Shown here: in pieces, positions 2,461-24,159 of the stretch
How positions within the stretch are numbered: position 1 is the first letter of the stretch
Layout of the letters: each line of letters opens with the position of its first letter
NCBI GenBank assembly: GCA_976226885.1
Contig: OZ320313.1
Location: 136,710,001 to 136,774,000 of the forward strand
Length of the DNA stretch: 64,000 nt
Direction of reading: 5' to 3'
DNA from: Iphione sp. A-MEVVRFRX5
Lineage: Eukaryota
The notes under the pieces: model-generated
The model's database searches: none
What the model was told of the DNA's origin: nothing
Seen by the model: the letters and a program-made list of their open reading frames with translations, nothing else
Position numbers and translations under genes: made by a program

Positions 2461-4057
2461 TACTCAAGGACCCCCCAAAGAGTGATAAGATGTCTAGAAA
2501 CTCTAGATTGAGTATTTCATGGGCATACAGTGTAATTGGGTCTAATGGTTAAATTAGACGGATGCAATTGATAAATTTCAATTACTATTATGTACATTGT
2601 AATAAAGGAAAGCTCCATCGGTCTTTTCTAATGCCATAGACGAGTATTAATGGAAAATTGAGAAATCAATCGAGGAAATATACAAAAAAGAAATGAACAT
2701 TCCTAGAGTACAAGCTGCAGTAAAAATTCAACGTAGTCCAGTACCAACAATTTTGAGGTTCGTTTCCAGTATAAACGATCCAATAGGCAGACATTTGTAG
2801 AATATATGCAGCTGAATTCGTACTCTGGCGACACACATCTACCGCAGACCATCCATCAAGATGATAACAGTAAATTAGTTGACAAAATACAAATTCATAC
2901 TGCGCACGTAAAACTCAAAGGTGCGTAGTCTCCAAGTAGATATCGTTACACTATATAATATTGTAGCATTGCACACATTTCAGAGATTGATAGAATATGG
3001 CACATGCACTTTCAGATTCTGCCTTATGCCTCTAACAGAGAGACTCGAGAATGTTGCTACTTCTGTTTCTTTGTCCTGATGGAAAGGAACTGCTCGTCAT
3101 ACTAGTATCCTTATATTCATATTATCTGATGTCAGATAAGTGGTGTTTTTAATGACGTAAAAAACTAAACAAAGCACGAGTGATGGTCATATTCAAACGT
3201 TTCGATGCTTTGATCCTTGACGCCATGCAAGACCTTGCACCTTTAAATTTGGCTAGGCGTCAAACGACCAAATAATATACATATATGTAGATATACATAT
3301 ATACGTATAATTTCCATATTCCTGATATCGTAGCAAATGGTTACAGATCGTGAAGTGATTTGAAAATCTCCGCAGCCCCACTATACTTAATAGATTTCTG
3401 AACTGTTGACTATACCCTGCGGTCTTATGCATGATCCTAAGTGCGACTATGTGGGACATGTACGTCATTAATCTATACGTAAGCTTGATATAGATAACAA
3501 AAATTATCTCCACACGCGATAGGGGTACGAGCAGACCATGCGCAGTGTGAAAGAATAGTGCCAGTATAAGAAATATCTTAGCAAATGCACTTGACAGTAC
3601 ATGTTTGTGTCCATAGGTTATGTCACTACTTACATGACACTTTTGACAATGTGTACTTTAATACATGTATATAATTTTTTTGTGTAAAATTCACAATTTC
3701 TGTCATAAATGATTAGACCTAAGACAAATCTGGTATGTGTATGCCTGTTTCTGCAGGGCAGAGAGACAGACAGGTTTCCAGACATATTTTTTTTGCATGT
3801 ATATTTGTGCTCATTACATATACACACTACCCATGTATACACAGCACTAACTACATGTAGTTTGCTTCTGCCATGCTTCACCAGCATGCCCACTGCCATA
3901 ACCACTCGCGTAGGTAAACGCGTTGTCCTCAGAAACACTTGGTAACAGTTTGTCCATTGAGATCGTGGACCTTATGCCGGCATATCCATTTCTGGATTAA
4001 ATGCCACAAGTATAATATGTACAGTGAGTGTGACTTGTCAGCGAACATTTAACGTGG

Positions 4058-4402: not shown

Positions 4403-5929
4403 CCCCCCAAAAAACATGAATTGGTGAACCTTGCCAGCCAGTGTCTAGTGAGCTTTGTTCATCAGTTAACCGTTTTTCAGCAGAGTGGGCGGAATAAAAT
4501 AAGTCCTGAAGAGGAGGGGAGGGTAGTTCTCATGTCTTTACGCCCGCCTATAGTGGGTACATGTAGTTAAATGTAATGTAACGTAAGCCTAGCCAAAGAG
4601 GAGTACTACTCTTGTGACAGTAAAAATATTGTTCCTCTATATCAGTCGATATCAATGTTCGATTGATAACGTCGAAAGCTTCCTGCATCGCCTGGGTTCT
4701 CGTCATGGTTGCTGACTGCAGAATTACTACAGGGTTACTTCCTACAGGGTTATTTCCGGCCAAGCCAGACCTTCGGGGCTCTCTTAATTTGTTCTAACCA
4801 GTATAATTAGCACACTAGCTTTCCCCTTTTCATTTCTTCTCGTCGGAGTTTTGGTGGAAATGAGAAAAGATAAAGAAAGGACAGAAGCCAGTTTATAAAA
4901 AAAATACATGTGTATCATCTATGCAATCCACTGCCTGTCCTGTATTCGACAAAAGATGCTAACAGCCATGCATTGTCACGGTTTAGTGATTGGTCAGTTT
5001 TTGTTATAGCAGTGGAACTTATCGTTTTAATATGTACTGTGATGAATAAAGGGGGAACTGGCAACTCGGGGAAACAGTTAAAGATCTGGCTCATTTATTC
5101 GGTTTGACTGAAATACATTAGCTCTAATCACTAGCTTTTGGGATATCACTACTCCTTCATCAGGTGAAGCATAATGAGGTGAACGTTCGTTCATTCGTTT
5201 GTTGGCGATTTGCGGTATTGGGGACCTCTGGGGTTCGCCGGTCAGGCAGCCCAGTTCTGAGTCGGAGTATCTTCCATCTCCGTGTGTCGTTGTCAAGAGT
5301 CACTCATCTGTCAGAGCTGCTCTGCGGCAGTGAGGATGGCCGTTGTCTTTGGGAGTGAACCGTTCAAGGAGCAGTCCTCTTATAGGAGAGCGTTGCTATG
5401 AGAATCGTTGTATAGAAACCAATCAGAGTGGCTGCACATAGCATCTGCTGAACAACAGCAACATTTAATGAAATGGTGATATGTGATTGGTTGACAGTGC
5501 ATCAATAACTGAAAAGAACCCCAGAGAGGATATGATCAAATGTAGAAGTGTATGTAATTGATGATAAAGAGAACTAATCAAAACTTGTGTTCAGTATTAT
5601 GTAAAAGTCCATTAAAAATGTACTGTGCTCTTCTGAGACGTAATGTATAAATATATTGTCGTCACTATCAATGAGCCATCATGTTCGTGCTTTACTTTGT
5701 AGGAGGAGAAACTATGGTACATGCATAATTTATATTTGAAACATAAGTGCCTTATATGAACTAGATCTAGATGAATGTATTAGATATTATTGTTTCCTAC
5801 TTCCAAGAGGAGTGAGGGATCTTAGGATCGCTGCTATCCAACTGTCCAACCCTCCGTCATGGTTTTATCTCCTCCTAAACTAGTGTGTCTAATGATTTTT
5901 GGATATGATAATTTCCTAACTGGCTTGAT

Positions 5930-9240: not shown

Positions 9241-12200
9241 GCGAAGTTGAATGAAGAGCCAGGCCACTGTGTGTGGTATGGTGAATGTGGCCGCGACCCA
9301 ACCACACACAAGCCCCTCAACTGTTTGTACAACGGCCCCGCCCGCCAGCTGAACGACAGTGATGCTATCAAAATCCTCCAAGATCTCTGTCCGCAATATG
9401 TGGATCCGAACAACAGTAAGTGTGTGTGTGTGTAGATGGGTGGGGGGTAGGTGGGTTGGATGTGCAGGCATGAGTGAGTGCAGCCAGGAAAGGAAATTGT
9501 ACAGGGATGCTTGGTATATATGCTGCATATACATGTATGTGTTTTTTACAGTAAGACAGGATCTCGATGTATTCATGTATCATGTTTGGTGGCCTTGAAG
9601 TGCCATGAAAAGCTTGACTGTGCCACCGTGCTCACATGTTTGCATGTAGAATTATGTATAATCTCAGTAGATAAGCATAGTACCCATTGAAAACATTTTT
9701 TCATGGCCACTGAAACACAGCAGAATTGGAGACTTCCCAATTTGAAAACATGGCACATGCACACATGCTACACCTATACATGGAGACACTTCTCCTGTTA
9801 TCCTGTGTATCCAAAACTCACCATGAAAACACAGCACCACAGCCTTGAAGATATGTGTACATGGAGATCCTACCTTAAAAAATTCTCACTGGAAGATTTG
9901 TTCTCTGATTTATGTTGTATAGTTCCTCATAAAAATCGCTTTAACATCTTCAGTAGCAACATCAGTAAATTAAACTGAATGATATCTGAATGATGTGCTT
10001 CACAAATTTTGGTTTTCAGTTATCCATTCTTAACTTTCGTAGTAAACAATAAATTGATGAAAAAGGCTGGGAACTCCAGAACTTCGTAGTAAACGTTCAT
10101 TTAGTACGAGTAGAATTTGTTCATTTGACATCACTAAGTTCAATTTCCCTTCTCCTATACAGGATAAGGCTTGCTAAATCTTTCTCTTCGGAATGTCTTG
10201 AGTCCTGATGTTATATGTTGTTGTTCTGGCAGATGAGAAGCCTCGCACCTGCTGTAGCGCTTCCCAGCTGCAGACCATGGATGCGAGCATGGCCCTGCCC
10301 AAGCAGCTACTGTCTCGGTGTCCAGCCTGCTCCCAAAACTTAATCAACCTCTATTGTGCCTTCACCTGCGATCCGCATCACAGTCGCTTTGTTCGAGTCG
10401 CCACCAACAACACCGAGAGCATCACCGCTGTCAACTATACGGTCTCCTCCGACTTCGCCAACAACATGTACAACTCGTGCCAGGACGTGCAGATGCCCAG
10501 CAACAACCAGCTCGCCCTTGGCACCCTCTGTGGCCGCGAGGCCTCCCAGTGCTCGCCTAAACGCCTGCTTGACTACATGGGTAATCCCGCGAACCAACAA
10601 ACGCCCTTCAGAATCTCCTTTACTTTAAGCAATAAACCTGTCACTATCGACAACACGACGCTCTACCCGATGAACCAGTCGACGACGCCGTGCTCCGAGT
10701 CCTGCAGCTGCCAGGACTGCCGTGCCTCCTGCGGTGCCCCACTTCCTCCCGTAGAACCAACCAAGCCCTGCAGGATCATTGGCCTCGACTGTGGCGTCTT
10801 CATCGGCTCGTCCCTGTATTTGGCGTTCGTCCTGCTGTTCGGCACGTACCTCATCTGGACATACCTGTACTGTCGCAGGACTCCCCAATGCGCCGATCTG
10901 CCAAAGCGCACGGGAACTGCCTCGGTTGACAACACGCCCATCAATGGACCCATTAATGCGCATGCTGGTGACAGTGGCCGGCCACGCGTTCGCTTCCTCC
11001 AACCATCGCTACTGGAGCGACTGGGCGCGCGACTGGAGCAGCAGCTCGAGCGGGTCTTCTCGGCCTGGGGCCGACTGTGTGCGCGTCGCCCAGTCGTTGT
11101 CCTCGTTATTGGGATCATCGTGTGCATTGTGCTCGTGTCGGGTATCGCCTTATTCAAGGTGACGACAGATCCAGTCGAGCTGTGGTCAGCACCCAACAGC
11201 CGAGCACGGCGTGAGAAGGAATACTTCGACAAGAACTTCACGTGAGTCAGAGACTCCTTCTATTCTGCTTCCCGTTCCGGTGTNNNNNNNNNNNNNNNNN
11301 NNNNNNNNNNNNNNNNNNNNNNNNNNNNNNNNNNNNNNNNNNNNNNNNNNNNNNNNNNNNNNNNNNNNNNNNNNNNNNNNNNNNNNNNNNNNNNNNNNNN
11401 NNNNNNNNNNNNNNNNNNNNNNNNNNNNNNNNNNNNNNNNNNNNNNNNNNNNNNNNNNNNNNNNNNNNNNNNNNNNNNNNNNNNNNNNNNNNNNNNNNNN
11501 NNNNNNNNNNNNNNNNNNNNNNNNNNNNNNNNNNNNNNNNNNNNNNNNNNNNNNNNNNNNNNNNNNNNNNNNNNNNNNNNNNNNNNNNNNNNNNNNNNNN
11601 NNNNNNNNNNNNNNNNNNNNNNNNNNNNNNNNNNNNNNNNNNNNNNNNNNNNNNNNNNNNNNNNNNNNNNNNNNNNNNNNNNNNNNNNNNNNNNNNNNNN
11701 NNNNNNNAAGTAATTTTCGCGACCTGTTTACTCACAGGTGTGACATCCTCTAACGGTGGCAGAATGACACCGGTGTAGTTTTTCTATGCTTCAATGCATT
11801 TGCCTCACAATGTGCTCCCCTCTTACAGACCCTTCTACCGGACAGAAATGCTGATTATCACAGCCACAGATGGTTCCCGATGGCAGCGACCAAATTCGGC
11901 CCCTGCTGAAGGCTTTGATTGGTATGGTCCCGTGCTACGGAAGGAAATCCTTACCCAGGTGCGTCCCCTAGTCAAATGGCCAGTAGTTGGCAGTCTCTCT
12001 GGCAGATATTTTAAATCGCTGCATTAACATTTTAATTTTTCTATTTATTGTCAATGTGTATCGAAGAACAATCATTCAATATTAGAACAAAGTTTAACTG
12101 TTGTGGTTTGGAGAGCATAGATGGCACCAAGGTTGTTCTTGGGATAGAGTAGAGCTGGTAAATTATGAAGTCCAGTAGGATTCCTCACGTTAAGCCAGAT

Positions 12201-15200
12201 GCCTTCTTGCTTTTAACCAGGTACTGGAGCTTCAGAATCGGATAGCTGGGTTGACGGTGTATGATAGTGAGCTGAAGATGAACATTACGCTACAAGACAT
12301 CTGTTTTGCCCCGCTGTCGCCAGGGAACAAGAACTGTACTATTATGAGCGTCCTGAACTATTACCAGAACAGCAAGGCCAACCTTGATCGCATCATCAGC
12401 GATGGCTTCGACACGATTGCAGACTACATTGACCATTTTAATTACTGCGTCGAGTAAGTTGTGCTGTCTTGTATCTTTCATCACATTCGACTAAATGCAG
12501 AATGTTTGGCTATCAGCGTTTACCAGTTGCTGGGACAGATTATTCACATGAACAAGTTATCAAGCTGAAAAGCCGATGCTTTCCGCCAAATTACTCATGT
12601 GGTGTTTAATACACAACTTTAGGGATGTAGTGATATCGGTGTCAACATTAATACATAGTCTATGAATGCCCAGTTCCGTTATGTTTATATATTTTGCCAC
12701 TGCAAATACCTACAAGAACTACAAATGTCCCTGCAGCTGACCAACTTGTTTATGACTCGTACTATAGAAACAAGTGGCAAGTGCCTGGAAATCATGCATG
12801 TACATCGGTTGCCCGCTGGAGGCATGTAGTGTAAAATGTGGAAGGAATCCAGAGAGCATCCTCAGAGTAACAGGCTTGGTAACTATGTGAACGAAAGGCA
12901 GATTTGACTCCAGTGTTGAGCAGCAACATTACCCTGACCTTCTGATACTGTTTTCGTTGGAGGTCAGTGGACTCGCCTCCATTAGTTGGAACCATGGTAC
13001 ATGCCAGCTGGAGGGCCTTTACTTTCAATCCCGAGCCAGCCTTGAAGGTCGTGCAATCAACAAGGAAATGTGAGGCAAAATCAGTTTGGAGGGGGCAGCA
13101 CAGCCAGCATTGGCGAGGGGAGGGGAGGTGATGCTACAGACTGGGAGCTGGCCTCTACGAAGGTTTTGCAGGGAATGAGGAAAAGGGAGGGAGAGAACTG
13201 GGAGGGAGTAGCCTGGTGATGAGCATTGGGGATGGAGAGGTTAAGCCGGGTACCAGGTGGAACAGCGATGGGAAGGGAGCAGTGCTGGTGGCAGTTAGCG
13301 GGGAATGTCGGTGGTTGTAGATAATGCAGACCTTCCGATTGCAGCTCTGAGCAGGGGCTGCATGAGGACACCACCGTCAGCTCGCTCACCACCATCTGAT
13401 TAGCACTGGGCAGCTGGGCAGGGATGGCTGGGAGGGTGAGAGCTTGCGAGTACAGAACAATCAGCTTGCTTGCCCCCACCCTGATGGACACCAGGCAGCT
13501 GGATGGGTAGGGATACATGAAGGGAAGGCACATAACCTATTTTAGAATATGAAAATATTTCTCATTTGCATATAAACCACACAGATGTATGGTTATGGAG
13601 GGAAACTGCACAAATTGTGGACGTTTGGGGGGGGCACACATTTGCCACAATGTGCTCTCCACCTTGCTGTTCACTGCTGCACCTTCTGCTAGGCTGTGCG
13701 GTTCTAGCATTTCAATACCCTACAGCAAGACCGAGATGCCTCAAATGAATCAAAAGAAATCCTTTAAAACAATCTGAAACTTCATATCTGTTTATCAAGT
13801 TGAAATGGATCAAGCCCACTTTATTTTCTAATTTATTTGGAAGATTTGTAACTTAACTGCAATCCATGTAGTGATTTAGAAAATCCTTATTGCATGCTCA
13901 TGTTCACTAGCGTACAGTATACTCTCTCCATTCCACACACCCTCTGATCTGCTTCAAAACGTCCGCATTTGAGACACGTCCGCATTGGAGATCGGACCAG
14001 GTTTTGTAGGGGGTGTGGGATGGAAGCAATATCCCTTTCTCTCTCTCTCTCTAGTAACATGTGTATACTCTCTGAAACGTCCAAAAAGTGCTGAATTTGA
14101 TGACTTTAAGTCCAAAAAGTGCTGAATTTGATGACTAAAAGTCCAACAAGTGCTGAATTTGATGACTAAAAGTCCAAAAAGTGCTGAATTTGATGACTAA
14201 AAGTCCGAAAAGTGCTGAATTTGATGACTAATAGAGGTGTGAGATACAGTCCCTCCAGGGTGTGAGAGACATCAGAGAGGTCGCCATTGACACTCCATAC
14301 CTCTCCCACCTCCCTCTCCAGGGTGTGAGAGACATCAGAGAGGTCGCTGTTGACGCCCCCAGCAGGTATAGACTGCGAATCGGCCGGTTTAGACTGCGAA
14401 TTGGGGGGTTTAGACCAAGAATAGATTGGTTTAGACTGATTTCAAGGTGTGAATTCGCATTTCAAGGTGTGAATTCAAGGTGTCCAGAGGGAGACGCTCT
14501 CAAAAATTAGCTGTCCTGATTAGAGAAGTCCCCTTATAATGGTTAACAACAGGAAACATTTCCGTTCTGCTTCAAATCGTCCGCATTAGAGATGCGTCCG
14601 CTTCCGAGACGCATCCGCAGGCAGAGAGTGTACTGTATTTACAAATGCATGCACTAGTTTCTAATAATTGGCACAAAGAAGACTCATCCATCAGAAAAAC
14701 TGGTACAAAAAAAATAGGTCTTGTAAGTCACTCTTTGTCATTGCTCTGTGTTTCATCTCTTTCTCTCACAGTTCACCTACGTCAGTTGCGGACACTACCC
14801 AATTGCATCTGCCATGTCTCGCTGCATTTGGTGGGCCTGTTCTACCCTGGGTAGCACTTGGCGGTTACCCTGGTGAGTAAATTACAATCTATATCGCCCA
14901 GCTTTTATTGTTTCTAGTAAAGTAGGAAAATTGTTGATTTGGCATTATGTTATAATGATAGTATACACTTTTTTCAGATCTGTCAATCTCTCTTGCTCTT
15001 GCATACCAGATAATAGAGGACCAATTTCCCTGGTGCATCATGTACAGCCGCCTTACCAACCTACCTGCCTACCCACCCACCCTCCCACCAAAACGACCAC
15101 ACACCCATCTACTTGACTGGCTGACCGACAGACAGACCCACTGACTGTAATCATATTTAACAAAACTAATGTGGAGGTGCTGTGGCTATGTTACAGGGGA

Positions 15201-18200
15201 CAACTATGCAAATGCCACGGCGCTTGTGGTGACATTCACGGTGAACAACTTCCAGAACGACACCTTCCAGAAGATGGCTCTGGCCTGGGAGAAAGGCTTC
15301 CTTGAATTGATCAGCCAGTACAGGAACAAGAATATCTCCATTGCCCACTCAGCTGAGGTGTGTGTACTCCTGGCTTCCACTTTGAGAGCCACACAATTCC
15401 CCTACAAGTACAAGTCTTTATACTGTATTTATCCTCGTGCTTCATGCTGTGTGCAATAACAAAGGGTGGTTCAAGATGAGATCAGGCACAAGAACCGTGC
15501 AGACATATCGACGCTCTGTGAATGTATTGCATGTATTGCATTATTTATAAATTTCATGGCTTAATGTTTCTCTTTGTTCTGCTCTCTCCTATACAGAGGT
15601 CAGTTCAGGATGAGATAAATCGCGAGAGTAACTCGGACATAGCCACCATAGTAATCAGCTATATGGTCATGTTCCTCTATGTGACCCTTATGTTGGGCCA
15701 GTACCACTCGCTACGCACTCTCCTAGTAAGTCTTTTTAACATGAATTACTCTAAATGTTAACTTGAAAGTTAAATTGCATGGCTTTATTCTAAATTTTTC
15801 CTTGTGTAATTCCCGTTTCGCGCAGAAATGTACCATGGAAAACTGTTGTTTTACAATATGGTCTCACGAAGTTGAAATTACTGTATGTGTCCGCAGTTCC
15901 CTATACTGTAGCTCTGCCAATCAAGTCTTCGTACTTTTCTTGAATGTAGGTCTTTTTTTGCTGACGACAAAAGGTCAGTTGACATAATACCAGACAGCAG
16001 AAAGACATTCCTAACCACCAAATGACACACGTTTTATCTTGATGTCAACAATGGAGTCAACATTGTCAGTTGTAGTGAGGAATAGGGAACTGCAGACACG
16101 TATTCAGAGGAGGTCAGACCAACCTGCAGAGTTGTCTTGGTGGCCATCGGACCTCATCTGTATGAGATGGGTAGGCATGCGCCTGTACTCGTCGATGTGT
16201 AGGTTGGCCTACTGTGCCTATCGGGCAGTCAGGATGGGTGCCAAGCTGCATTGCTGGCTGAAGGTGAGGTGGTCAGTATGTACATAGCCACTGGTGTCCC
16301 TGACACCTCCTGCCTCACCACCACCTTCTGATAACCACCTCCCTGTTATAACAGGTATAGACGCAGGTAGGCATAGGCCTGCACTCTCTGATATGTAGGC
16401 CAACCTACTGGGCCTATTGGGCAGTCAATGTGGGTGACGCATCCCACTGCCTGTGGGTGTGGGTAGCTGCAGCTGCATTTTCCTTTAGTGAAATGATTTC
16501 ACTGTGGTGAATGATGGATTAAATTTGATAGCTCAGCAAAGGGACTACCGACATTGTTAAATATTTTTTTTTATAATCTAATATATACATTGTACCTGCA
16601 TTTTTATAGAAACATGACTCACTACCTGAAAAAAAAAGAAATGCCGTGAAACTGTGACCATTTAGTTTGGATCACTCATATATTCCGCATCAAATATGAC
16701 CAGGTTGTTCCCCCTCATTGTTTCTAAACAGGTGGACTCTAAGATTGTCTTGGGCCTGGCTGGTGTGCTCATCGTGCTCTTCTCAGTGTGCTCAGCTGTG
16801 GGTTTCTACAGCTACATTGGTGTGCCCGGAACCCTAATCATCATTGAAGTGGTGCCTTTCCTTGTGCTTGCTGTGGGCGTTGACAACATCTTCATCCTTG
16901 TGCAGGCCTATCAGGTGTGTAGTTAATCCGGAATGAGGGTTCTTTTTCATGGAAGCAACAGATATCACTAAGAAACACCAACAACGATGCATCACTCAAC
17001 ACTGACAATACACACGTGCAACAGTCTCATCAGTTGACCAAATGATGATTTATGGTTGTACTGAAGTAGATTTATATATAAATGTTTTTAGAAGAGTACG
17101 TCGTACTGTATACCATTCGCATTTAATCATTGAGTGGGGAGAGATAAAGAAGTTTGACAAGACAACATTCACTCTGACACTTGATTGATACAATGTAAAT
17201 AAATTGTCAGCGCGAGGAGCGGAGCTCATCAGCTGACATCCCTGAGGTGATTGGCCGCGTGGTTGGCAAAGTTGGCCCCAGCATGCTTCTCACCAGTCTA
17301 TCAGAGTCACTTGCATTCTTCATCGGTAAGCACATTACCCAAAGTAGATGTATTCTTCATCAGTGGATATCTCTCCAACAGTGGCTTTTAGCAAGTGGCA
17401 GTTGCTCATAGCCAGCTACAGCTCAACTTGTCTGTATCATGCTTTGTGGTCTCGATTGTTTTATGCATGGATTTTAGCTGAAGATGCCTCAGTTAAAAAT
17501 ATGGTAAAAAATTGTAATCCAAAACAAGATATAGTACTTTTAAACCGATACACATCATTGCTACTCTTATGTGGTAACAACTATCATTTGGTTAGCTTCA
17601 GAGGCCTATCAACCAGGTAGTCATAGCCTACTATCTTTTTTTTTTTAAATACTATTTTTTTGTGGGTGTTTAAGAATCGACCGCAGGCTGCTTCCGTCCG
17701 CCTGTTTCTGTTCATATATATTTAACTGATATGTTTTATCCCTGACTATAGGTGCAATGACACCAATGCCAGCAGTACGTGTCTTCTCACTGTATGCAGC
17801 CATGGCAGTCCTCTTCGACTTCCTACTACAAATCTCCTGCTTTGTCGGACTGCTCGCTCTGGATGCACGGAGACAGTATGTAAGTATTGACCCTCCCACT
17901 CCTTCCTTCAACACCCTGCCGAACATGAAACTCTTCATTGGCTTACTTGTTAGGGATGAGAGCTAATCACGAACGTTTGTACAAGCTTCTTCTCTGGACA
18001 GAAATCTTTGAGCTAGCCACGTTGTGCCTCCGAATTAAGACTGACTCAGTTGTCACTAATTTTCCAGGGAAGCCATATCCATTTTGATAAACTAGAAGAT
18101 GCCTTGTCAGTTTGGATTTTTCCAAAGTGCTTTTTTGTCTCCTGTCTCATGGAGGGGGGGGGGACCTTAGGAATGCTGCTGGCCAGTTTCCCGACCTTCC

Positions 18201-21200: not shown

Positions 21201-24159
21201 CAATGTTGCTTCCGCCCATTAGGGGGGCTATATAGTGTCCCCGGTCAGAGAGTGAGAGACAGACAGACAGACAGTCAGACAGACAGACAGAATGTGGTCC
21301 TAGGTTTAACCAAACAAAGGGGAGGGTTGTGGTGGTTATGTACTGTTAGTATGGAGTGTACATGTATACATGAATATGTGTAAATATATGTAAACTCCAT
21401 GGCTTTCACTCATGCGGTTCTCTGTCTGTTTATGCTCATAGTAAATGACTCGCACCATGAGCTTTGCGAGGCTTGCCCAGTGTCAGAGGTTGATGGACGG
21501 CCTGTTCGGGAGGACTTCTTGCACTACCTGCCCTGGTATCTAACTGATAATCCTGGCCTCAAGTGCGCCAAAGGGTAAGATAGACAACACCTTCCATATT
21601 TTATCCCATAGATTTTCATACTCGAACCTCACTACAAGAGTAATGGAAACTTAGAAAAGGACCCCAACCAAAATATGGGCAGATAATATGTGAGATGACC
21701 TCACCTGAGCTCATTTTGTCTTCCTGTGCTCCCTTTCGCCAGGGGTCATGCAGCGTACGGTTCAGCTGTGCAGCTGCTCCATAACAAGACAGCAGTAGGA
21801 GCCACCTACTTCCGCACCTACCACACCATCCTGCGCAACTCCAGTGACTACGTCGATGCACTGCGCTGGGCACGCAAGATAGCAGACAACATCACACGCA
21901 CCCTGAACCAATGGCCTGGTCAGAGTGCGTCAGGCCTCAGCAACATTACTGACAGCCACCAACATGAGAAAGTTTTCCCCTACAGGCAGGTGTAGTTTGT
22001 CCCATCTCATAGTAAATCACCTTTGTAAGTGTGAATTGCCAGGTGTACCAAAGTGTCACAGTGCAGCAATGATCCGCAAGACAACAGAGAACACTCCTTT
22101 TGACAAAACGAAATGCAGCATGCTGTTATTTTTATCCTGAAGCCAGTGTATTAACTCTTGTAGAAGTTTTAGCTGAAATACCTATGATTGATAAATATGA
22201 ACATTACGAATGCTCTGTATTAGAGCTTTAACTGAGATACTCAAGCTTCACCTCTTGGTTAATCCCTGTATTTCTTTTTTATTTTACAGCGTGTTCTATG
22301 TGTTCTACGAGCAGTACTTGACTATTGAGCACGACACCATAATCAATCTGACCTGGGTACTGGGCGCCGTCTTTGTGGTGACGATAATCCTTCTCGGCTT
22401 TGACATTTGGACTGCGCTAGTGATCACGTTCACCATCTTGCTGATCATTGCCAACATGCTGGGTATGATGGCGCTTTGGGGTATCAGTCTGAACGCCATC
22501 TCACTCGTCAACCTTGTGATGGTAAGCACAGCCATTTTTAAGAACGAAAAGTCGCTACGCCATATTTGAAGTTCATATGACGATTTTCCTACACCCAAGG
22601 ACCGGCTTTTCCTGTTCACATATCTACATTTTGGCCAGTTGCAGCGAATTCGCTCCCAAGGATGAATTATAGTTGAATCGACATATATGTTTCCTTTTGA
22701 AAATATTGATATGGTATTTGGTATGGAAAGGTAATCAAACTCTGTTTTGATTGATATGACTTTAGGTCAGTGACATGGAACTACTTATTCGCAGAAAGAA
22801 ATATTCAGAGAAATGAAATGTCCCCACAACTGATTAAAATAGTTCACCAGGACGCTGCTTTCATTTTATCTTTTAAAAGAACCTCTTTTATGTGCATATG
22901 AGGGTCCACTAGGGCGCTTCAATGTTTCTGCCTAGTGGAAGTATCACACTAAATAATCACCAAAGTACATGTCATAGTCTATCATTTAGGTGCATTTGTC
23001 TTTGTATCCTTAAGTGCTATAATTTCCTTATGTATGGTTTCAGACGGTGGGTATATCGGTGGAGTTCTGCTCACACATTGCTCGCGCCTTTGCTGTCAGC
23101 ACAGAAACAACTAGAGTGGCACGTGCCAAGGAGGCACTCACTCACATGGGCAGTTCGGTGAGTATTCAATGCTGCTGGCATTAGTTATGAGACCTTGGTC
23201 TTAAAGGGTGGACAGGAATCTTTTTCCTTTGTCTTTACATCATGGTATTTCTATTTGTTATTGGTGTGTGCGCATGTGAGTGTGTATCTGCTGGCGTGTG
23301 TGCTGATATGATTGAGGTTGTATGCTTTATAATTGTACATGCAGATTTTTAAGGATAGATTGAAATCTTTGTCGTCCACGGTTCCGTACAAAATTGATCT
23401 GTGATTTTCAGGAAAACAAAGACTGTATTTAGTATGAGAAGCACGCTGTTGTCTGTTAAGACAATTTTATTCTTTATCCCCATGTGTATTGATCTTTTCA
23501 GGTCCTAAGTGGAATCACATTAACCAAGCTCGGTGGTATCGTTGTGCTGTTCTTCTCCAAGTCGCAGCTTTTCCAAATCTTCTACTTCAGAATGTACTTA
23601 GGAATCGTATTGTTTGGTGCTTCACATGGCCTCATCTTCCTCCCAGTCTTCCTCAGTTACTTTGGTGAGTCACCGCTCAACTTTCTTGTCGATACCAATA
23701 ATACTTTCTTCAGTCCATTACCTCTAAAGAAATATCCACCGCAGGCTAGCTGGAGTGGTTTGTGAAATGTATACATTCCATTTTTTATTGGGGGGGGGGG
23801 GGGGTAGAGATTTGAGCTTTACTAACTGCTAAGAAGACTGACTTATGGGGTCTCTGCGACTTGTGTAAATGTTACATGCACTATATCTGCCGTTGATTTC
23901 CCCAGGCCCAAGTGTCAACAAGGCCACCGTGCTACGGAAGCGTGACAGTGGCAACTTCTCCAGGCCACAGGTCACTAATGAGGATGAGGATGATGATATG
24001 TACGGTGTGCCACACATTGACCGTGCACCTATCCTACGGAGTGCTCAGCCTCCAGGCTATGACCAGTTGTACAACCAGCCGGAGGAAAGTACTACCACCA
24101 ACAACCTACCCCAGCAGCAGCCTAGCGACTCCCGAAGTAGTACCTGTGTTGTACAATAG
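9241..24159 (+). CDS. NPC1: Niemann-Pick C1-type lysosomal cholesterol transporter (5'-partial, signal-peptide exon not located; ~1350 aa from the visible exons)
   Basis: Frame-consistent exon chain: 9241-9415, 10233-11241, 11829-11958, 12221-12453, 14772-14872, 15197-15357, 15597-15725, 16732-16914, 17211-17325, 17752-17879, 18865-19011, 19262-19351, 19524-19714, 19901-20022, 21442-21574, 21743-21985, 22290-22521, 23044-23157, 23502-23664, 23906-24159 (sum 4053 nt, stop TAG 24157-24159). All introns GT-AG except one GC-AG. Hallmark motifs: [37 protein letters not shown], sterol-sensing domain [90 protein letters not shown]1 vs NPC1L1 orthology not tested. Confidence 0.96.
11708..11827 (-). 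repeat. Inverted copy of the 6022-7149 repeat unit, ending at the NPC1 exon acceptor
   Basis: 11708-11827 is the reverse complement of 6022-6141 with only a few mismatches; preceded by a 424-nt N gap (11284-11707). Confidence 0.92.
13915..14635. mobile_element. Non-autonomous Tc1/mariner/pogo-type MITE (721 bp) carrying minisatellites
   Basis: TIRs CAGTATACTCTCT / AGAGAGTGTACTG (12/13 match), TA on both flanks (13913-13914, 14636-14637); CTGCTTCAAA-CGTCCGCATT blocks near both ends. Confidence 0.75.
14079..14231 (+). repeat. 31-bp minisatellite x5
   Basis: Unit GTCCAAAAAGTGCTGAATTTGATGACTAAAA starting at 14079, 14110, 14141, 14172 and 14203. Confidence 0.95.
15463..15591 (+). pseudogene. Dead tandem duplicate (pseudo-exon) of NPC1 exon 15597-15725
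   Basis: Ungapped 129-nt alignment to the next exon: [18 protein letters not shown] vs [18 protein letters not shown], same-register CTCCTA end, acceptor CAG reads CAA, in-frame TAA at 15562-15564. Confidence 0.8.

Follow-up and report, generated by a model that had tools for sequence, protein, structure and literature searches.

A decayed tandem copy of an NPC1 exon as the likely splice acceptor region of the surviving exon in Iphione sp.

The intron in front of one exon of the NPC1 gene of Iphione sp. holds a second, decayed copy of that exon, lying directly upstream of the intact one. The region was analysed within a window of 64,000 nucleotides of contig OZ320313.1, and all positions given below without the name of another locus refer to this window. 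The explanation preferred here, to which a probability of roughly 0.6 is assigned, is that this stretch is the decayed upstream half of a 134-nt tandem duplication, and that this upstream copy was intronised and now forms the acceptor region of the live exon.

The NPC1 locus and the two exon copies

The NPC1 gene lies on the forward strand of the window and extends from approximately position 9250 to beyond position 23700, with 16 exon segments being placed by local tblastn with the database protein P0003. This protein was used only for the local exon map, with the Pfam and PDB searches being run exon by exon. Through the Pfam searches, the domains NPC1_N, NPC1_MLD and Sterol-sensing/Patched were assigned to separate exons, in order. 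Repetitive and undefined sequence was also found in this gene: an intronic minisatellite at 14075–14231 (31-nt units, 5.1 copies, 93% matches) lying away from the splice junctions, short repeats at 14365–14476 and a run of N at 11284–11707, in the intron just after the large N-terminal exon.

The live exon (15597–15725) corresponds end to end to residues 607–649 of human NPC1 as represented in the PDB structures (E = 2e-10) and is followed by a GTAAGT donor. It shares 63–86% protein identity with the orthologous exons of relatives, while a word search with the 79-aa open frame around it returned no match. The exon preceding it ends with the residues ...SAE in phase 0, with a GTGTGT donor at 15358, and the first exon matched by the Sterol-sensing model of Pfam is located at 16666–16923, with the live exon sitting between these two. 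A reading of this DNA made earlier from the sequence alone (hereafter the sequence-only reading) had taken the live exon to encode the entry helix of the sterol-sensing domain, and the assignment to the first helix of this domain is upheld by the match to residues 607–649 and by the matches of the next exons to the Sterol-sensing model. The intron before the live exon measures 239 nt (15358–15596). The features of the region are as follows, in order of position.

15184–15357, forward strand: preceding NPC1 exon, end of the middle luminal domain (Pfam NPC1_MLD, E = 1.8e-14; tblastn with P0003)
15358–15462, forward strand: presumed original intron, 105 nt (the orthologous intron of relative L011 is 110 nt in all)
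15463–15591, forward strand: dead exon copy, 129 nt with no net indel, 61/129 nt identical to the live exon
15522–15545, forward strand: 9-nt tandem repeat ATGTATTGC, 2.8 copies, inside the dead copy
15561–15565, forward strand: candidate branch-point-like TTAAT (YTNAY), predicted from the sequence
15565–15594, forward strand: predicted pyrimidine tract of the live acceptor, formed by the 3′ end of the dead copy (Y 0.83, T 0.53)
15592–15596, forward strand: 5-nt spacer TACAG with the acceptor AG of the live exon
15597–15725, forward strand: live exon, 43 codons, ending SLRTLL (PDB NPC1 chains, E = 2e-10)

The dead copy aligns without gaps to the live exon at a period of 134 nt and in one register over all 129 nt. 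Recalculation gave 33 identical positions in the first 54 nt and nine identical residues in the first 18, as had been reported, and further along the peptide LFINFM stands opposite LYVTLM, with both copies ending in xCT CTC CTA and their last 8 nt being identical. The smaller details on which the sequence-only reading relied, namely the TACAG spacer, a CAA at 15460–62 and a TAA at 15562, are likewise all correct. No other in-frame stop occurs in the dead copy. Its end lacks a GT donor, the CAA occupies the position of its acceptor, and only the 5-nt spacer separates it from the live exon. Both copies are equal in length (129 vs 129 nt) and in the same phase as the preceding exon. Copy number at this site is two, with no minisatellite array, and a third copy would fall inside the preceding exon. 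Homology and register together thus support the central claim of the earlier reading, namely that the live exon is immediately preceded by a full-length tandem duplicate of itself, now dead.

Similarity between the copies is unevenly distributed, with identity being 61% in the 5′ part, 25% in the middle and 47% in the 3′ part. The middle 32 nt, exon positions 54–86, are at the level of random similarity (8/32 identical; p = 0.008 against uniform decay), and it is with this stretch that the 9-nt repeat ATGTATTGC coincides. For this repeat to have arisen with no net change in the length of the dead copy, a compensating deletion would be needed. Uneven decay together with a repeat that leaves the length unchanged is unlike what simple neutral decay predicts.

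Homology, decay and present role of the upstream copy

That the similarity is a chance resemblance of an ordinary pyrimidine tract and intron to the exon was weighed using several comparisons. The local Smith-Waterman score alone reaches only p ~0.01 among 34 exon-flank comparisons. The peptide of the dead copy alone had no Pfam match, and its sole PDB match was a non-significant one to a designed helix bundle (E = 0.71). A nucleotide profile built from eight live exons found the relic of the window only at E = 0.63 and missed a similar relic in the relative L005, described below; the relics resemble the exon of their own species and not the family consensus. All of this would be compatible with chance. 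The full-length comparison speaks against it, as 61/129 is the best non-self placement of the live exon among ~128,000 placements over both strands of the window (the runner-up being 55) and was equalled by none of 20,000 dinucleotide-shuffled introns (maximum 60) and by none of 20,000 shuffled versions of the exon (maximum 58), which was the shuffle check proposed with the sequence-only reading. A full-length gapped test of the dead copy against the live exon gave z = 4.8. The two ends also match independently in the same register. The best ungapped segment, located in the 5′ part, gives p = 0.002–0.005 by itself; once this part has set the register, the 3′ third is 20/43 identical (p = 0.002), and p is ~0.001 for the exact 8-mer with which the copies end. 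The geometry is exactly tandem. A chance origin of the similarity is thus hardly credible, and the alignments establish both the homology and the tandem geometry of the two copies. Within the NPC1 gene of the window this is the only such case: the 13 other short exons compared with their own flanks gave identities of at most 0.39, vs 0.47 here, and comparison of the other NPC1 exons of the window with their flanks gave no local alignment below p = 0.01. A further control, in which random 129-mers were compared with their upstream 239 nt, produced equal local scores in 8% of cases; this control was dropped as a chance null because its matches were genuine minisatellites.

The sequence-only reading had also drawn from an apparent synonymous bias the hint that the two copies had both been translated at one time. 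Between species, this exon is near saturation at third codon positions (12–23 of 43 identical). With divergence at this level, dN/dS between the copies was replaced by counts of changes per codon position, which were polarised with the live exon of L009, the nearest relative. The branch of the dead copy carries 50 changes, spread 18/19/13 over codon positions 1, 2 and 3, and the live branch of the window carries 10 changes, of which nine are at third positions. Within the first 54 nt, the dead branch has counts of 6/5/4 and the live branch counts of 0/0/5. Of the differences that had been cited as evidence, ATC/ATA and ACG/ACC are changes of the live exon, the dead copy keeping the older state. 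The bias therefore comes from the live copy, and the proposed hint is not supported. The polarised counts indicate that the dead copy decayed without coding constraint.

These counts also bear on the idea that the two copies are a former pair of mutually exclusive exons, both translated before the upstream one died. Such a history would be in keeping with the equal length and frame of the copies and with the several third-position-only differences in their first 18 codons. Once polarised, these differences map to the live branch, with the changes on the dead branch being even over codon positions. A transcript with both copies would be out of frame, 134 not being a multiple of 3, and the 5-nt spacer is too short to hold an intron. 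The copy also ends without a donor and carries the in-frame TAA at 15562. A past as an alternative exon is unlikely given the frame shift, the short spacer and the absence of GT at the end of the copy. Inspection of orthologous introns for an intact or mutually exclusive pair, which had been suggested as a check, also went against this history, as no second match to the exon was found in the five relatives lacking the upstream copy. Former mutually exclusive splicing is accordingly held to be highly improbable.

The claim that the live exon now has its pyrimidine tract and acceptor region in the 3′ part of the dead copy agrees with what was found. The candidate branch point TTAAT overlaps the TAA stop of the dead copy, with its A at 15564 lying 33 nt before the live exon, and an AG-free zone of 92 nt (15503–15594) precedes the live acceptor. 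Over exon positions 90–129, the T content is 0.51 in the dead copy vs 0.28 in the live one. Differences between the dead and live copies in the 3′ part are from purine to pyrimidine in seven cases and the reverse in two, vs five and five in the 5′ part. This gain of T and bias towards pyrimidines fits a reshaping of the 3′ part under selection for acceptor function. It is thus suspected that the last 35–40 nt of the dead copy supply both the branch point and the tract. The presumed original intron has a moderately pyrimidine-rich end at 15424–15459 (Y 0.61), followed by the dead acceptor CAA at 15460–62. There is also a cryptic AG at 15463–64, the use of which would give a 261-nt exon with two TGA stops. 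From the conserved reading frame and the orthologues, normal splicing is expected to use the acceptor at 15596/15597, and it is likely that regular splicing is undisturbed by the dead copy.

Relatives and the origin of the duplication

To place the duplication among relatives, orthologous loci were fetched through open frames called on long exons. The relatives compared were L005, L006, L009/L010, L011, L012 and L013; the loci of L007/L008 and L014 stop short of the exon. In all six genomic relatives the exon, both of its neighbours and the intron between ...SAE and RS... occur at the same position, which indicates that the intron is old and was only lengthened here. The orthologous intron of L011 (6468–6577 of that locus) measures 110 nt, and the relic in the window is preceded by 105 nt of intron, which fits the gain of 134 nt by an intron that was originally short. 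Among the other relatives, the intron measures 301–3309 nt.

The live exon of L009 is identical to that of the window at 101 of 129 positions. The dead copy is equally close to both (61/129 each, with 10 vs 10 informative sites) and shares 41–50 of 129 positions with the other six live exons. Among the sites at which most relatives differ from the exon of the window, the dead copy shares the state of its own exon at 14 and that of the majority at five. This combination places the duplication in the present lineage, at about the age of the split from L009. The duplication is thus specific to this lineage on these site patterns, and old, with an estimated age about that of the split from the nearest sampled relative. 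No relic of the exon was found upstream of it in L009/L010, L006 or L012; in L009/L010, look-alike stretches picked out by eye at offsets of 110–114 were not significant. The lack of a relic in L009/L010, though the estimated age is close to that split, counts against the preferred explanation.

Copies of the same exon were found in three of the seven sampled lineages. In L005, the exon is immediately preceded by a decayed copy of itself at 13944–14038 (Smith-Waterman score 36, vs a null of 19.3 ± 2.7; glocal z = 4.3). In this locus TTAATTTAAG at 13944–53 resembles by eye the acceptor tail TTAATTTCAG at 14069–78, so that the copy appears to include at least 10 nt of acceptor tail. In L013, a young copy of approximately 90% identity, provided with a TTTTCAG acceptor of its own, is found 546 nt upstream, with a further exon fragment 113 nt before the live exon. 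The young copy (3544–3880 of L013) is split after exon position 68 by an element of ~240 nt with inverted ends, probably a small transposon, and resumes at 3853. Exon edges have also been copied into the introns beside neighbouring NPC1 exons, at 183–245, 4924–4997 and 5392–5505 of L012 and at 5293–5404 of L013, two members of one clade (z 20–60), with 5′ edges copied into the upstream intron and 3′ edges into the downstream one, the typical layout of the 'mirage' copies discussed below.

The mechanism that would account for the arrangement in the window begins with a tandem duplication of 134 nt, comprising the whole 129-nt exon and up to 5 nt of flanking intron, by which a short pre-existing intron would have been lengthened from ~105 to 239 nt. 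Only the downstream copy was joined to the donor, for which reason only the downstream copy would have stayed an exon. The upstream copy would then have become intron, with its acceptor changing from CAG to CAA, a stop being gained and decay proceeding without coding constraint. Reshaping of its last 35–40 nt would have produced the TTAAT that resembles a branch point, the tract rich in T and the long zone devoid of AG. The likeliest duplicated unit would be the last five nucleotides of the intron (xACAG) together with the exon, that is, a junction-spanning unit of the 'mirage' type taken from the acceptor side. It should also be noted that, when the duplication was new, strong competition would have been expected from the upstream acceptor, which still had its original tract and whose product would be frameshifted, and this counts against the proposed explanation.

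The source of the five extra nucleotides, and whether the relics of the several lineages go back to one event, allow of other readings. According to the sequence-only reading, the unit consisted of the exon and the donor GTAAG, with microhomology at AG making the join; the AG of the former donor became the acceptor as GTAAG drifted to TACAG. The acceptor AG (15595–96) and the AG within GTAAG (15729–30) are exactly 134 nt apart, which equals the period of the repeat, and such a route would account for the position of both breakpoints no more than 5 nt from a splice junction. A microhomology of 2 nt is weak evidence, however, and the spacer matches the donor at 2/5 positions (TACAG vs GTAAG) and the five nucleotides upstream of the dead copy at 3/5 (AACAA vs TACAG), a comparison that with five sites has no real power. 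The claim that a donor was turned into an acceptor is thus not sustained, as an acceptor tail fits at least as well. Had the donor been co-duplicated, moreover, the upstream copy would have had a good donor as well as its intact acceptor and should have survived, yet it was the downstream one that did. In L005 and L013, too, the younger copies carry acceptor tails, not donors. On the last two grounds the acceptor tail is favoured and is considered the probable source of the extra 5 nt, with descent from a donor being judged unlikely. The closeness of the breakpoints to the two splice junctions (within 5 nt at either end), together with the separate copying of this exon in three of the seven sampled lineages, could also suggest exon-precise copying tied to splicing or to spliced RNA, as opposed to random slippage; this, or the alternative that exon sequence was actively selected into branch point, tract and AG-free zone, is regarded as quite improbable.

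A single ancient duplication, common to L005 (and L013) and with patches kept similar by gene conversion within each lineage, would agree with the presence of relics upstream of the live exon in three lineages, lying directly before it, and with the patchy similarity seen in both the window and L005. The strong similarity of the L005 relic ends at exon position 94, and its last block has an offset of 134, as in the window, which would also fit one event; this shared offset is here taken as a coincidence. Against common descent, third codon positions between species are near saturation, and each relic matches the exon of its own species, that of L005 being 32/38 identical to its own exon and at most 25/38 to that of any other species. 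The architectures also differ, with at least 10 nt of copied acceptor tail and the early end of similarity in L005, and with the copy of L013 lying 546 nt upstream and being split by an inserted element; four other lineages have no relic, and the intron of L011 is too short for a copy. One ancient event is therefore considered very unlikely. From the differing boundaries of the relics, and from the resemblance of each to its own exon, the relics in the window, L005 and L013 are most readily understood as products of one common process acting on separate occasions.

Significance and comparison with known systems

On the alignment evidence, the NPC1 relic is real and is an ordinary leftover of a small tandem duplication, of a kind already described. 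It offers a clean and datable example of such a duplication lengthening an intron, and an example of what was once coding sequence probably serving now as branch point and pyrimidine tract of a splice acceptor. Duplications that copy splice junctions seem common in this group of animals, and the NPC1 relic is a further case, from a gene that is conserved and essential. What is known of NPC1 itself is unchanged, with no evidence here for alternative forms of the sterol-sensing domain protein.

Tandem exon duplication is known to give rise to mutually exclusive exons, and unannotated intronic copies of exons have been reported as well (PMC9013439; see also PMC8373072 and PMC9741552). As in such pairs, the NPC1 case has a neighbouring homologous copy of the same length and frame. 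Unlike them, its copies have no intron between them, and the dead copy lacks splice sites of its own, contains a stop and is unconstrained.

Exon duplication followed by intronisation of one copy has been described in Drosophila (PMC2891723), and the formation of introns by tandem duplication is treated in PMC3265369 and PMC4974935. The present case resembles the Rogers model and the Drosophila cases in that a tandem duplication probably included a splice signal, the mRNA would have remained unchanged, and one copy would have been spliced out, so that coding sequence became intron. It differs from the Rogers model in that those cases create a new intron inside an exon, whereas the intron of NPC1 is old and merely 134 nt longer.

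A further comparison is with the 'mirage' copies of the amphioxus gene BflGb6, in which the '3′ end of intron plus 5′ part of exon' is found upstream of the real exon (PMC3087553). The copies there have units of 150–160 bp that are 81–100% identical, and regular splicing is reported to be undisturbed (PMC3087553). As with these mirages, a head-to-tail copy of exon sequence lies degenerating in the adjacent intron of NPC1; the splice signal was probably copied with it, the unit here having only five non-exon nucleotides. In contrast to BflGb6, there are two copies only and no minisatellite-like multiplicity, and the unit consists of the whole exon and at most 5 nt of intron. The NPC1 copy is also old, with 47% identity compared with the 81–100% of BflGb6, and appears to have been pressed into service as an acceptor region.
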